From Magallana gigas (taxonomy: Eukaryota): a DNA stretch of 64,000 nucleotides. The DNA is taken from NCBI RefSeq assembly GCF_963853765.1, contig NC_088861.1, positions 48,980,001-49,044,000 on the forward strand, read 5' to 3'. The notes under the pieces were generated by a model. The model was not told the origin of the DNA and ran no database searches. It saw nothing but the letters and a program-made list of their open reading frames with translations. The position numbers were made by a program, and so were the translations under genes. This document shows positions 43,052-57,177 of this stretch, in pieces. Positions within the stretch are counted from its first letter, which is position 1. Each line of letters starts with the position of its first letter.

Positions 43052-43239
43052 TTATGGTATAAGAGTGCGAACCCTACTCTCAATTGGTGATCTACACACC
43101 GGGCACGTTTCGACTCTTTCGCCACACGATCGGCAGCAACATAGGTGATTACACGGTTGAAACATCACCTCCAATTCGAAATCAAGACAGACCTTACACT
43201 TTGTCTTCTGTCTTAGTTCACTAACCACCTGTTCAAGGT
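43052..43239 (-). CDS. Terminal exon: IAP/MDM2-type RING finger
   Basis: DLEQVVSELRQKTKCKVCLDFELEVMFQPCNHLCCCRSCGERVETCPVCRSPIESRVRTLIP-stop, after a TTTCTTTCAG acceptor. Confidence 0.92.
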
Positions 43240-46200
43240 CTGAAAGAAAAATCCCACGTATATCTCAAAATTGACAAACCGTGATCAAAATGTACTAAAT
43301 ATTTTAGAGCATTTCAGATAATTTTATAAACCCCCCATTTACAGAACAGTAAAATCACTATAGTATACAGGAATAAAGTTTTGGGAAAATTATTTGTTAA
43401 CTTGTACAATTATTTAATTTTTATTGAACCCATATAGTTTAAAATACTTAAGGACATTTCATCTTACCTTGGTTTTGAGAACTTGAGGTTCTACCCCCAG
43501 TACTAGGTGGCTGTGACCTTGAGGCGTTTTGGGGGATAACATGAGGGTTCTGGTCATTGGAATATTGTGTGTTTAAGACTTCACGAGTCTGCCCAAAATT
43601 CAGTACTGCATTCATCAGGGCATCGGAATTAGGGAATGCGTTACCTGAAGAAAATATAACAATAAATATAGATTATATATTCCAAGCGAATTATCAATCT
43701 GGTCTATGTTTCCAAAGACAACTATCGTACCTTTGAATAATGAATCAATTAGAGTCATTTTGTTTTCAACATCATAAAAGTCAGCAGTTTTAAATTGCTG
43801 AACTCTAATGTATATAATATTTGCTCATATGAGGACAGAAATCAGTGTCATTATTCACTATTTATCTTTAAAAAAATTAGATGTCTTAGGCCAAAAAAAA
43901 ATCAGAGAAATCCGCGGAGAATCTGGTTTGTCATTTTGAAATGTATTTTCGTATGTTGCATTGTTGTATGAGGAAATTTCAGAGTGCATTTTGTCATTTA
44001 GCATTTTAATATGCATGTGCATTCCAAAACATAGTTCCAGCGCCAAATTGGATAAATGCAAAGTTCGCTTTACCCAACAGTTTACAAATAATGTACCTTT
44101 ATTTCTATTTTTTTAATTAATTAGTATCAAAAGATTTGAGACATAAGATAACAGTGGTTCGCTAAGTGATATTGGTTTCTGTCGTCTCATTTGTCTGTTA
44201 AAGACATGCCTGAACCAAAAACTGCATCCAAACAGGTACTTGCTAGGACTGGAGGTCTTAAATCGCATGAGTGAGATTCAATGTTCGACCTTTCTGACTT
44301 GCGTACGTATGCAGTTATTATGCCTGATTCGTTTTTTACAGCTTGTCTAAAGGCTGACCACTTTCATAGAACGCGAATTCAATTATAAGTATTTGCTCTC
44401 CTATGGACAATTTTGAAAACCACATTTATTAACAAGGAGCGCTGATGTACACAAATCTTTGTCAATTTGTGCTACCACTTCACATTCAAACTTTCAAAGT
44501 TTACTATCATATTTCAATTTCAAACAGTCTTTAAAAATTCCTGCAGCTCCCTATTATGATTCAAAGGTTTGTAGTAATTCTATACGTTTCATCTCCTTTA
44601 TATTTAAAGAATTTTGCTTAAATTTTATTCTATAGCAGACAATGTACAGTCATGTCAATTAAATGGGCAAATAATATACGTGTTTTGTCTATTGACCACT
44701 TCTCGAATAGTTCCACAAGACAAAAATGTGCGCTAAATTCATTTTTTGAGGTTGAATAATTTGTTGTTTGATCCTACCTCTATTTGAAGCTCAACTGAGC
44801 TGAAAGCTCAAGTGAGCCTTTCTGATCACATTTTCACCAGAACCACAGCGGCAATTTCAACAAAATTTTGCCCAAAGCAACTTTAGGCAAGAGGAATCCA
44901 AAGTTGTGAAAATTAGGGACCACGTCTATTTGCAAAGGGAGATAATCGGGAATTATTGGGAGATTTTGAGAAATTTTAAAACATCCTTTTATCAAAAACC
45001 ATTTGACTAAGAAAGCTTAAACTTATGTAGAAGCATCCTCAGTTGGTGTAAATTTTAAATTTGTGAAAATCATGACCCTCGGGGGTAGGTTGGGCCCACA
45101 TGGGGGGGGGCGGGCTGTTCAATTTGTTTTGAAGAAATATATTGAGTTAATATTTAACAATCTTCCCAGAAACTAATCAGTCAGAAACAATGAATCTTAT
45201 GTGGAAGCATCCTCATCTAGTGTTCATTCAAAGTTTGAAAATCATGACTCTTGGGGGTAGGGTAGTGCAACAATTGAAGATTGAATTGAATTTCTATATA
45301 GTAATATAAAGAGTCAATCTTTGTTTTTTTTTCTCAAAAACTAATAAACCGGGAAAGCTTATGTAGAAGCATCCTCAGCTAGTGTAGATTCAACGCTGTG
45401 AAAATCATGACCCCACGGGGGTACGGGGGCAACACTAAGGGTTAAAACTTTTACATAGGAGTAAAAGGAGCAATTTTTAAAAAATCTTCTCCTCAGAAAC
45501 TAATCCAGCAGAAAAACTGAAACTTATATGGAAACATCCTCAGGTAGTGTAGATTCAAAGTTATGAAAACATGACCCCAAAGGGAACGGTGGGATCACAA
45601 TGGAGATTAAATTTTTGCGATGCTCATCATGTGAAATGACTATAAAATCATTTTGTTAGAAAAAGGACTTGGTTATAAACGTAAGAATATTGGAGGAGAA
45701 ACTGGATTTTTATTTATGCAGGATCTACATGTACATGTATTATTTCTATCGGTAATTTTTTTTCTTATTTAATATCGTCAAATTTTCTGATTATTTTTAA
45801 ATGTTGCTTGACTATTTATTTATAAAATACTCTTCCATGCAAGAATACTTATTCTATGTTCTATTAATCTGGCTTTAAATTTACATTAAGATCTTTACAA
45901 ACATTTATTAGTTTACGATGCGCCGCTTAAACTGCCGACGTCGCCGTCTTACTACAATTTTAAGTTGTTTTTTTTTTTAAACACTCTATAAACAATAGTT
46001 ATAACTCTGTCAAATGTGTTCACAATTTTACGAAAATGAGTAAAAAAAAAACAATTTTCGAATTAAAATAGTCCCTCAATTTTTATTATACTATTCTGTT
46101 TTTACATGTTTTCTTTGCAGTTGCGCCGCTTGTCAAATTCATTATCAAGTATGTTTTGTATTTTGAATATATTTTCAAAGATATATCTAATTACGTTAGT

Positions 46201-55342: not shown

Positions 55343-55376
<34 letters not shown>

Positions 55377-57177
55377 AAAAAAAGAAATTCATGAAATGAA
55401 TTTGTAGACTGATGATGTATATCTTGCATAGTATAGCGTGGGTTTTGGCCTACCCCGTATACCATTAATTTTGGTCGATTTATAATATTTTTTGAATTTA
55501 TTTCCCTCCATGCAAATTTTTTCAGTTTAATTTTAGCAAAAAAGTTTTTCAAGGTAGTAGATTTTTCAAGGTAGTAGATTTTTCAAGGTAGTAGATTTGA
55601 TGTTCAATCCTGGCTTCACACACTATAATATTTTCAGCAGATGAAAACAAGAAGTAAATTTGCGTGGCAACTATACCTTATTAACTATCAATTTTAAATT
55701 GCATTGTTAATGAAGAAACCATAACCATTAATCAGACAATTATCTGCACTTGAGTCGAAAATGGCTCACATGTCCGGTAAAACAATGTAATTGAACACCC
55801 CTTATCACTGGGTTTAATTACACAACTAAACATGAAATATCGAAATGGTTTTTAAGCAGTTATTTATAATTCATCGTAATGTTTAGTTTTTGATTTATGT
55901 AACAAACTGAAATTCGTTGTGTTGTTTTTAATTTCTTTTGGTTCACCCTTCTGTTATATACATAACAAACCTTTGGGGAGCCCCTTATTTTAAAACTTCA
56001 GCCGTTGGTTTCCATGGTTACATATCAATCCAGTGGGAAGCCCCTTGTTTATACTTTAAAATAGTCAAGTAAAAACATGCATGGGATAGAACCCGGGAAA
56101 TCCAGCCGATAGACGTGGTCGTCATCCCGTATTGTGCTATCGGGGGCTTGTCTTTAGAAATACATCAGGTATTTAAAAACTCATTTTGGTTCGTTTTTAA
56201 CAACACACATTTGAATAGTTTTCCGGTAGTATATATGATTTTCTTTTGTTAATTTTTTATATGGTGTCTTTTTCGCCTTGTTTTTGCTGCTAAATTTTCT
56301 ATCCCTGCGGAAGGTCAATAGCTGACAGATAAGGAGTGTTCTTGGATGCTGAATTATTTCTGGCTCCTGTATTTATGAGTAGCAATTTCCATTTTTATGG
56401 GAGAGTTTTTTGGAGACCGCTGTTTTACAGTGAATGAGTGAACTATGGCGACTCTTTCGACACATCTCTAAAAGTTAATTGTGAATTAATACCTGACGGT
56501 GAAATTTATTTCATCTTTCTAGAATGGGAAGACCAACTGTTTTTGTAACGAAATGGCGGTGCAAAGAATGAGTTTTAAGGAAAATTACTTGAGGGCATTT
56601 GATATAGTTAATCATTAAATGAATGGCCCATACATGTACCAAGGGCATCACGACTAAGTTCTGTTACCTGACAGAAACACAAACATCACCAAAGTCAATG
56701 ATACCGCAGTATATTTTTGGAATAATAGTTAAAACTGATGATAACTGATTTAAACAGCTTACAAAATGCAATGCCTGATTTTTAATATAATTCACAGGTT
56801 TATCCGGTCAGCATTGATAGGTCTGATAAAAATACTACAAGAGTTGGGATTGAGCCGATTTAAAACATTTGTAATCGGCATTTGTAATTTGATTCTTATC
56901 ATTTCACCATTTGCTTTTTTAAAAATTGTTTTTAAATCTCTTTTTTATCTGTGATGCATTATATTAAACGTATTAGTCAATTTAATTAACATGTGTTTTA
57001 TCTTACGAGAGTTTGTAGACCAGGAACCTCTTCTGCTTTCGCTACGCATTGGTGGTGAAGATGGTGAGTTATGGCGTCTATTAGGTGAAGTAATTTCCTC
57101 TTGTTCACTCGGAAATTGCCTCGTATCGTCCTCCATATACCTCCACATAGAGCCACCAGGATTAATTCTTAAGTTAT
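43052..57177 (-). CDS. IAP-related E3 ubiquitin ligase-like gene (5'-partial): Ser/Pro/Arg linker + 3 tandem cIAP-type UBA modules + C-terminal C3HC4 RING, at least 410 aa
   Basis: Minus-strand exons 57177-57007, 55136-55011, 49877-49722, 49364-49239, 47370-47206, 46845-46720, 43644-43468, 43239-43052; all GT-AG, phase 1, open frame to TAA. UBA consensus MQSPMVQxVLNTGVDxDRVRNVIERRIRDTG-NAYPNAEALMNAVLN aligns with cIAP MMNTPVINAAVEMGFSRSLVKQTVQRKILATGENYRLVNDLVLDLL. Confidence 0.85.
43468..46845 (-). CDS. UBA module 3 (exons 46845-46720 and 43644-43468)
   Basis: GHQEETRNVHAQMQSPMVQTILNTGVDRDRVRNVIERRIRDT / GNAFPNSDALMNAVLNFGQ... Confidence 0.85.
44782..45730. mobile_element. Helentron-associated element with Cg170-like monomers, reverse orientation relative to the 7-kb copy
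   Basis: Begins AAGCTCAACTGAGCTGAAAGCTCAAGTGAGC; ATGACYC recurs about every 165-170 bp together with AGCATCCTCA..TAGTGTAGATTCAA. Confidence 0.75.
47206..49364 (-). CDS. UBA module 2 (exons 49364-49239 and 47370-47206)
   Basis: GHQDATRQAQAYMQSPMVQSVLNTGVDPDRVRNVIEKRIRDT / GNAYPNAEDLMNAVLNYRQ... Confidence 0.85.
49722..55136 (-). CDS. UBA module 1 (exons 55136-55011 and 49877-49722)
   Basis: YQEETRQVQAQMQLPMVQRVLNTGVNPNRVRNVIERRLRET / GNSYPDAEALMNAVLNYEQ... Confidence 0.85.
52193..52306. mobile_element. 114-bp hairpin MITE with TAG...CTA termini and a 10-bp TSD (Academ/AcademH-like)
   Basis: Perfect 35-bp TIR TAGTCTCGTTCAACCAGACGCTCGGCTGTCTCCGT, extending to about 44 bp; flanks CAGTTCAATA (52183-52192) and GAGTTCAATA (52307-52316). 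Confidence 0.8.
53090..54396. mobile_element. Helentron-associated element with Cg170-like monomers
   Basis: Starts AAACAATAGGCCCATGGGCCACATCGCTCACCTGAG; tandem monomers with TTTCACAACTTTGAAT; (GACA)n near 54314-54356; ends CTCAGGTGAGCTAAAAAA. Confidence 0.8.
55331..55375. repeat. (TC)n microsatellite, imperfect
   Basis: Dinucleotide run with two interruptions. Confidence 0.9.
55546..55598. repeat. 17-bp tandem triplication TTTTCAAGGTAGTAGAT
   Basis: Three exact adjacent copies. Confidence 0.9.
55960..56148 (-). mobile_element. Degenerate tRNA-derived SINE
   Basis: Minus-strand head GCCCCCGATAGCACAATACGG (A-box-like) ... CCGGGTTCTATCCC (B-box-like). Confidence 0.35.

Follow-up and report, generated by a model that had tools for sequence, protein, structure and literature searches.

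An oyster gene places three UBA modules and an IAP-type RING on one mRNA

Whether three tandem UBA domains and a terminal RING are joined in one natural protein, from what such a protein would descend and what it might do are the questions raised by a 64,000-nucleotide (nt) stretch of the Magallana gigas genome (RefSeq assembly GCF_963853765.1, contig NC_088861.1, positions 48,980,001 to 49,044,000), the whole of which is referred to here as the window. On its minus strand, at 43052-57177, a first-pass annotation made from the letters alone had recognised three two-exon UBA modules before an IAP-style RING, and had taken these for the outcome of a recent duplication, for modules that could be skipped in pairs, and for an IAP-type reader of polyubiquitin chains with an architecture it did not recognise as described. 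Two RNA contigs are colinear with this region through all eight exons, so that a single mRNA carries the three modules together with the RING. The product, encoded by the gene LOC117691871, is an expressed and selectively maintained protein that combines an IAP-type RING with three UBA folds, likewise of IAP type, on flexible linkers. The function favoured here, with moderate confidence, is that of a BIR-less, IAP-derived RING ligase whose three UBAs hold polyubiquitin by avidity.

The splice sites were read directly off the minus-strand DNA, on which all of the following exons lie, and are given in window coordinates. Every junction is GT..AG and in phase 1, and the spliced frame is open through the eight exons from the first, e0, to the stop codon. 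Exon e0 (57177-57007), for which both acceptor and donor were read, is an internal exon with phase-1 entry that encodes a Ser/Pro-rich linker before UBA 1. The first module comprises exon a1 (55136-55011, 126 nt), coding for the pre-helix, helix 1, TGV loop and helix 2 of UBA 1, and exon b1 (49877-49722, 156 nt), coding for helix 3 and a disordered linker with a terminal basic RRRSRPS. A 357-nt inter-module intron (49721-49365) leads to UBA 2, with exon a2 (49364-49239, 126 nt) and exon b2 (47370-47206, 165 nt; helix 3 and a linker with RRRSRPS), and a 360-nt intron (47205-46846) to UBA 3, with exon a3 (46845-46720, 126 nt) and exon b3 (43644-43468, 177 nt; helix 3 and a Ser-rich linker). The pre-RING helix, the C3HC4 RING and an RTLIP tail are encoded in the last coding exon (43239-43023; coding part 43239-43052, stop codon 43054-43052). 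Some 30 nt past the stop follow a 234-nt GT..AG intron in the 3' untranslated region (UTR; 43022-42789) and a terminal 3' UTR exon of at least 1.7 kb (42788-41114). All numbers in the first-pass annotation, namely first exons of 126 nt, inter-module introns of 357 and 360 nt and phase 1 throughout, were correct. The limits it had set do enclose eight exons, but 57177 is the acceptor of an internal exon, with the gene beginning farther 5', and 43052 is the end of the stop codon, with the gene continuing 3', so that the feature represents merely the 412 C-terminal residues of 688 in a 95.5-kb gene.

RNA aligned over 43890-49889, comprising contigs from three studies and raw poly-A reads, is spliced across the 357-nt intron, the 1868-nt intron between a2 and b2, and the 360-nt intron. 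The first two of these joints occur in contigs of all three studies (the 357-nt intron as joint 49362>49720, in contigs of three RNA runs) and the third (joint 46843>47204) in two studies and two raw poly-A reads, with single contigs carrying a-b1-a2-b2-a3-b. Two contigs, L002 (ERR1758956, 3502 nt) and L003 (SRR14803170, 2045 nt), were fetched and aligned to the genome, and both are colinear with e0, a1, b1, a2, b2, a3, b3 and the RING exon. Exon e0 is 100% identical to L002 and 99.6% identical to L003, while exon a1 is in both contigs 100% identical to the reference. Both skip the 234-nt 3' UTR intron into the terminal exon, which reaches at least to 41114 and is covered by L002 at 98.6% identity, and L002 also carries two upstream exons spliced across a 50.6-kb intron to e0. 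The modules are thus neither mutually exclusive nor dead copies, as all three are held in one molecule by L002 and L003. In L003 the 356 nt 5' of e0 are continuous with e0, without splicing (window 57533-57007, minus strand), which reflects either intron retention or an internal start; the latter would yield a protein of three UBAs and the RING alone.

Two candidate structures that arose from this RNA alignment were rejected. An exon 5' of b1, placed on a2 with no mismatches, had suggested an a2-like first module, but the fetched contigs carry the reference a1; this piece of a1 was mis-set on its paralogue a2 because a1 lies outside the aligned stretch, and the zero mismatch count of that row, given despite 22 differences in 123 nt, is unreliable. 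Likewise, joints that go backward do not represent back-splices, as b3 and a1, beyond the stretch, were set on their paralogues; the exon order in the contigs is a1-b1-a2-b2-a3-b3.

The spliced model is identical, from e0 onward, to RefSeq isoform X1 (XP_065928028.1, 688 residues). In isoform X3 and four isoforms of the earlier annotation the changes are confined to the N-terminal part and the three modules are retained, while isoform X2 (P0001), the sole instance of skipping recorded, drops exon a1 alone, which leaves an orphan b1, or half a UBA; a search for contigs encoding X2 gave none on record. Skipping of whole exon pairs, from which proteins with one, two or three UBAs had been predicted, was not seen among the RNA contigs and RefSeq isoforms, the former being short-read contigs from which minor isoforms could escape detection. 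Three shorter open reading frames (ORFs) in contigs (P0091, P0097 and P0125) were considered as products of such skipping and rejected as colinear partial ORFs. The three modules are genuine diverged paralogous exons and do not reflect a collapsed or duplicated assembly, a possibility that the first-pass annotation had named, because the a-exon copies differ pairwise by 20-22 of 123 nt (about 17%) and the modules recur in the older RefSeq annotation, in the orthologue of C. angulata and in the RNA contigs. DNA runs contain 82-92% of the words of the stretch.

The gene was identified with a profile of the three a exons, which gave 55 matches among 1.84 billion representative proteins, four of them with several matched stretches. 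The top match, like the rest of its cluster, is a RefSeq model of LOC117691871 from Magallana (Crassostrea) gigas and bears the name "uncharacterized protein". Of the 95.5 kb spanned by this gene the window contains the 3' half, and it is identical to the assembly of the RefSeq gene across the 30.9 kb in which the two overlap. In the older RefSeq annotation (XP_034334649-52) the modules are present with few residue differences, and the C. angulata orthologue likewise has three. The window does not include the exons for the N-terminal 276 residues, which consist of a helical segment and 44-residue repeats, each repeat being contained in one of a series of tandem 132-135-nt exons (L001 32027-38824); two, three or four of these repeats occur, depending on the isoform and species. 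An origin of these repeats as degenerate UBA halves was considered and found unsupported, only a short QMxSPMxQ-like motif being held in common. The 50.6-kb intron between the N-terminal exons and e0 holds a nested gene. It also holds an unannotated minus-strand ORF (60404-60701; 99-128 codons) that ends at a GT in phase with e0. This was rejected as the first coding exon, since RefSeq and L002 use an exon 50.6 kb upstream; the ORF is unused by RefSeq and the two RNA contigs, with no Pfam match and no useful Atlas match.

Exon reading, Pfam and the PDB matches concur on three two-exon UBA modules before an IAP-style terminal RING. On the whole protein Pfam calls PF21290 (BIRC2/3-like UBA) at 48.2 bits, above the cutoff of 27.2, and the single modules each span profile positions 4 to 48-52 of 53. 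For these comparisons the spliced module, taken from the RefSeq protein, was needed, exon a alone giving only sub-threshold matches in Pfam and none in the PDB. Module 2 matched the PDB sequences of the cIAP1 UBA (3T6P; 1.8e-4) and the XIAP UBA (2KNA; 0.01). The same two UBAs, XIAP 2KNA and cIAP1 3T6P, formed the best two Foldseek rows for its AlphaFold model, in which the predicted local distance difference test (pLDDT) score is 84 and which superimposes on the cIAP1 UBA with a root-mean-square deviation of 0.9 Å over 46 columns; the Foldseek E-values are weak, as is usual for a domain of this small size. In a model of residues 330-688 the chain forms three folded helical modules (pLDDT 80-92), the pre-RING helix and the RING (86-93). 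The inter-module linkers, of about 35-40 residues, have pLDDT below 50, and the predicted template modelling score of this C-terminal half is 0.24. The model thus describes the UBAs as independent beads on a string of disordered linkers.

The RING exon matched PF13920 (zf-C3HC4_3) at 1.7e-13 and, among PDB sequences, those of cIAP2 (3EB5), BIRC7 (4AUQ) and cIAP1 (6HPR) at 3e-14 to 1e-13; the XIAP RING was also matched, which extends the range over the four proteins to 3e-14 to 3e-11. The alignment to these IAPs runs from the pre-RING helix to the last residues of the C-terminal tail, and the exon accordingly has both the pre-RING helix and the short tail that distinguish an IAP-type C-terminal RING. 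The C3HC4 motif is complete, with all eight zinc ligands, and its last Cys is followed by an Arg. The CKVC and CPVCR motifs align with CKVC and CPICR of cIAP and BIRC7, and hydrophobic residues occupy the usual E2-contact positions. The roles of these residues and of the Arg in E2 contact are presumably those known from published RING-E2 structures. At window position ~43170, between zinc ligands 2 and 3, the window allele reads CLDFELEV, where the RNA contigs, the earlier RefSeq annotation and C. angulata have CLDSELEV, a difference that represents either a polymorphism between Ser and Phe or a variant private to the reference animal.

No BIR (PF00653) was called by Pfam in the full-length protein (P0087), while the same scan found this domain in its closest paralogue (P0071) and in P0021, and the BIR zinc motif is absent from all minus-strand frames of the window. 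As it has no BIR, the protein is to be classed, from its sequence, as IAP-derived and not as an IAP, and the designation "IAP-type" that the protein had been given must be amended to that extent. A search of C. gigas proteins with a hidden Markov model (HMM) of the module distinguished at least six further genes with two to four tandem UBAs, one of them also with a BIR. LOC117691871 is thus one of at least seven UBA-array genes in the oyster. The BIR-bearing paralogue, XP_034334668 (P0071), combines a BIR with two complete modules, an orphan b and an almost identical RING. XP_065928044 has three UBAs and a RING, LOC105323696 three and a half modules, LOC117691873 and LOC117691855 four modules each, and LOC105344548 two modules without a RING. 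All share the two-exon tandem UBA module of LOC117691871, and most the same terminal RING, but they differ from it in module number and in their N-terminal parts. Those paralogue accessions that could be placed are all on the chromosome of LOC117691871. The word-index homologue and Atlas searches returned almost solely Crassostrea proteins and missed known paralogues, and are uninformative on other bivalves.

In a tree of the modules, which leaves the order of events within clade A unsettled, those of LOC117691871 group with the modules of P0071 and LOC105344548 (clade A; support 84/99), while the genes with three to four modules form a second clade in which modules match by position. All arrays nest in an oyster clade (98/99) together with canonical IAPs containing a single UBA. 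Synonymous divergence (dS) between the modules is 0.36-0.39, with a ratio of non-synonymous to synonymous divergence (dN/dS) of 0.35-0.42, and no more than a weak similarity is left between the 357-nt and 360-nt introns (233 identities in 413 alignment columns; z 3.7 against shuffles). Given these dS values and inter-module introns that are almost randomised, the module duplication is old, with each copy under purifying selection. Of the earlier proposal the tandem duplication of an exon pair, from which the array arose, can be retained; its recency cannot, and the BIR-bearing paralogue already has two modules.

Homology to P0071 starts just past the BIR of the latter, e0 being homologous to its post-BIR linker. 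Furthermore, the immediate upstream neighbour of LOC117691871 is a canonical BIR-UBA-RING IAP, in which the single UBA is likewise divided between an a and a b exon, with the intron at the same position. These similarities indicate that the C-terminal 412 residues derive from an IAP gene, and that the BIR part has gone, with new 5' exons, reached over the 50-kb intron, in its stead. The likely history is one in which a canonical IAP with a split UBA underwent tandem exon-pair duplication and then gene duplication, after which the BIR-encoding 5' part was replaced.

The architecture invites a functional reading in which the RING, like those of IAPs, forms dimers and recruits an E2 of the UbcH5 type. 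Since TGV stands in place of MGF in its loop, each UBA would probably bind weakly, and the three would jointly rely on avidity to retain polyubiquitin or partners that are multiply ubiquitylated. In this way the ligase could stay on complexes that are already ubiquitylated and extend or edit their chains, and would be a natural counterpart of the engineered UBA-ligase traps and of tandem ubiquitin-binding entities (TUBEs). Multivalent reading of polyubiquitin is plausible on the basis of the sequence. Whether the protein would be an active dimeric E3 and its UBAs jointly bind strongly is uncertain, on account of the TGV loop and the Leu in the tail. If the UBAs bind ubiquitin, the oyster genes would form a natural set in which a single ligase scaffold bears from one to four UBAs, and would supply extra players in oyster apoptosis and immune signalling. 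Such a set could reveal the influence of reader valency on ligase residence time and on chain building, which has so far been explored solely with engineered TUBE and ligase-trap fusions.

Several observations weigh against this BIR-less avidity ligase. The single modules score 18.2, 24.2 and 22.1 bits on PF21290, under the Pfam cutoff given above, although these scores are of the order reached by canonical oyster IAPs, which with their one UBA score 24-30 bits. Where cIAP1 and XIAP have MGF in the aligned loop, each of the three modules has TGV, and so do nearly all oyster modules, that of the canonical three-BIR IAP of Saccostrea among them; a brachiopod and other relatives retain MGF or MGY. 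In cIAP1 the MF>AA substitution in the MGF motif abolishes UBA-mediated binding (PMC5823975). The RING tail reads RTLIP as against RTFLS in cIAP and BIRC7, with Leu in place of the aromatic residue, and in P0071 it is RTRIP, with an Arg; the Phe is kept in the tails of P0003/P0064, P0005, P0020 and P0021, which are canonical and clade-B proteins. This tail Phe reportedly contacts the donor ubiquitin across the RING dimer in BIRC7. Finally, RefSeq also models the isoform from which exon a1 is missing.

With cIAP1, cIAP2 and XIAP (BIRC2/3/4) and the canonical oyster IAPs the protein shares the PF21290 UBA, the RING subtype and the C-terminal UBA-RING order, and with the neighbouring canonical oyster IAP also the position of the UBA intron. 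It differs from cIAP1, cIAP2 and XIAP in having three UBAs instead of one, no BIR, CARD or death-fold, TGV for MGF (a change common to oyster IAPs), Leu for Phe in the tail, and an unrelated N-terminal half. The closest functional analogues are engineered: TUBEs consist of four tandem UBAs, and fusion of UBAs to an E3 in ligase traps lowers the off-rate from polyubiquitylated substrates (PMC5103871). Like LOC117691871, these have several UBAs on flexible linkers or a UBA-E3 fusion, but they are synthetic, with high-affinity MGF or MGY UBAs and short linkers, whereas the oyster protein is natural, with TGV loops and linkers predicted at about 35-40 residues. The three UBAs of UBAP1 are said to pack as one rigid unit, in contrast to the independent beads of the model described above. 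The natural multi-UBA proteins UBAP1 (SOUBA), NUB1L and USP5/USP13 contain two or three UBA folds per chain (PMC3314968, PMC10185811, PMC3247260). Unlike LOC117691871, none of these is a RING ligase, and no natural RING ligase with three or four tandem UBAs was found described in searchable papers.

The suggestion that the architecture was undescribed holds insofar as the literature search found no paper on UBA-array oyster genes, but RefSeq already models the three UBAs, and the paralogues with two to four modules show that the gene does not stand alone. A survey of oyster IAPs (PMC8917759) and a 2026 survey of metazoan IAPs (PMC13159474) select proteins by the BIR and score the UBA as present or absent, and the passages on the UBA in the two mention no more than one. 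As such catalogues define the family by the BIR, UBA-RING derivatives that lack it fall outside them, and in RefSeq they are labelled "uncharacterized" or carry IAP names. The gene and protein accessions did not occur in the searched paper texts, nor did the five that were sought in the supplements of PMC8917759.

An extension of the avidity reading to the whole family, for which the likelihood is low, would see in the oyster genes a set of natural "ligase traps", mostly BIR-less, in which two to four individually weak TGV UBAs work jointly as a valency-tuned reader of ubiquitin chain length or density, or of trimeric adaptors. Such a family, if it exists, could set thresholds in oyster cell-death and innate immune signalling. 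Trimeric adaptors also figure in the foremost of the rival explanations, an unlikely one overall, according to which the array of UBA-like modules binds, multivalently, an oligomeric partner other than ubiquitin (for example through a short motif on trimeric TRAF adaptors) and the RING ubiquitylates this partner. The cIAP1 UBA binds the cIAP-interacting motif (CIM) of TRAF2 through the same MGF patch, weakly (dissociation constant 0.48 mM) and additively to BIR1 (PMC5823975). The change of this patch to TGV, which the entire oyster clade shows, its canonical three-BIR IAP included, fits a shifted binding specificity, and three modules on flexible linkers would suit a trimer. However, the IAP UBA fold and most core positions are retained, the Val at the Phe position is hydrophobic, paralogues with two, three or four modules indicate that three is not a special number, and the partner is itself only putative.

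Slightly less probable again is a role as regulator of canonical IAPs, in which the BIR-less protein would heterodimerise through its RING with BIR-bearing IAPs and either alter their stability or activity or bring them to ubiquitylated complexes. The RING, pre-RING helix and tail are nearest to those of dimeric IAP RINGs, and the gene adjoins a canonical IAP and shares its chromosome with further related genes. The tail aromatic that supports E2~Ub activation in BIRC7-type dimers is kept as Phe by canonical and clade-B proteins but replaced by Leu here and by Arg in P0071. Set against this, the eight zinc ligands, the Arg after the last Cys and the E2-contact hydrophobic residues (in the roles presumed above) are all kept, and Leu may do the job of the Phe. 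That the modules are artefacts or alternative or dead copies, and the real protein has one UBA, is very improbable and, as far as short-read contigs allow, already refuted: isoform X2 and the minor isoforms that may lie beyond the contigs would speak for it, but single RNA contigs from several studies hold three modules and the RING, the copies are divergent and under purifying selection, and the same structure is found in the earlier RefSeq annotation and in C. angulata.

A few further features of the locus were observed. The conserved basic motif RRRSRPS closes the linkers after UBA 1 and UBA 2 (window ~49722-49760 and ~47206-47250), is absent after UBA 3 and is also found in the paralogues P0071 and LOC105344548; it resembles a basophilic kinase site or a nuclear localisation signal. 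The intron between a3 and b3 contains tandem units of about 165-175 nt (repeat families D3-D8; window 44690-45690), of which inverted related copies with 67-80% identity are located in the intron between a1 and b1 (53360-54080). RNA depth over the 44690-45690 block is in the thousands and far exceeds that of the exons, in line with a repeat family that is abundant in transcriptomes, and this signal presumably stems from many genomic copies. The plus strand (window 3163-37153) contains several EGF-like exons that correspond to residues 42-131 of P0065, a fused UniProt model, and appear to belong to a different gene downstream of LOC117691871; a called gene at L001 111434-115547 corresponds to window 33052-37165.

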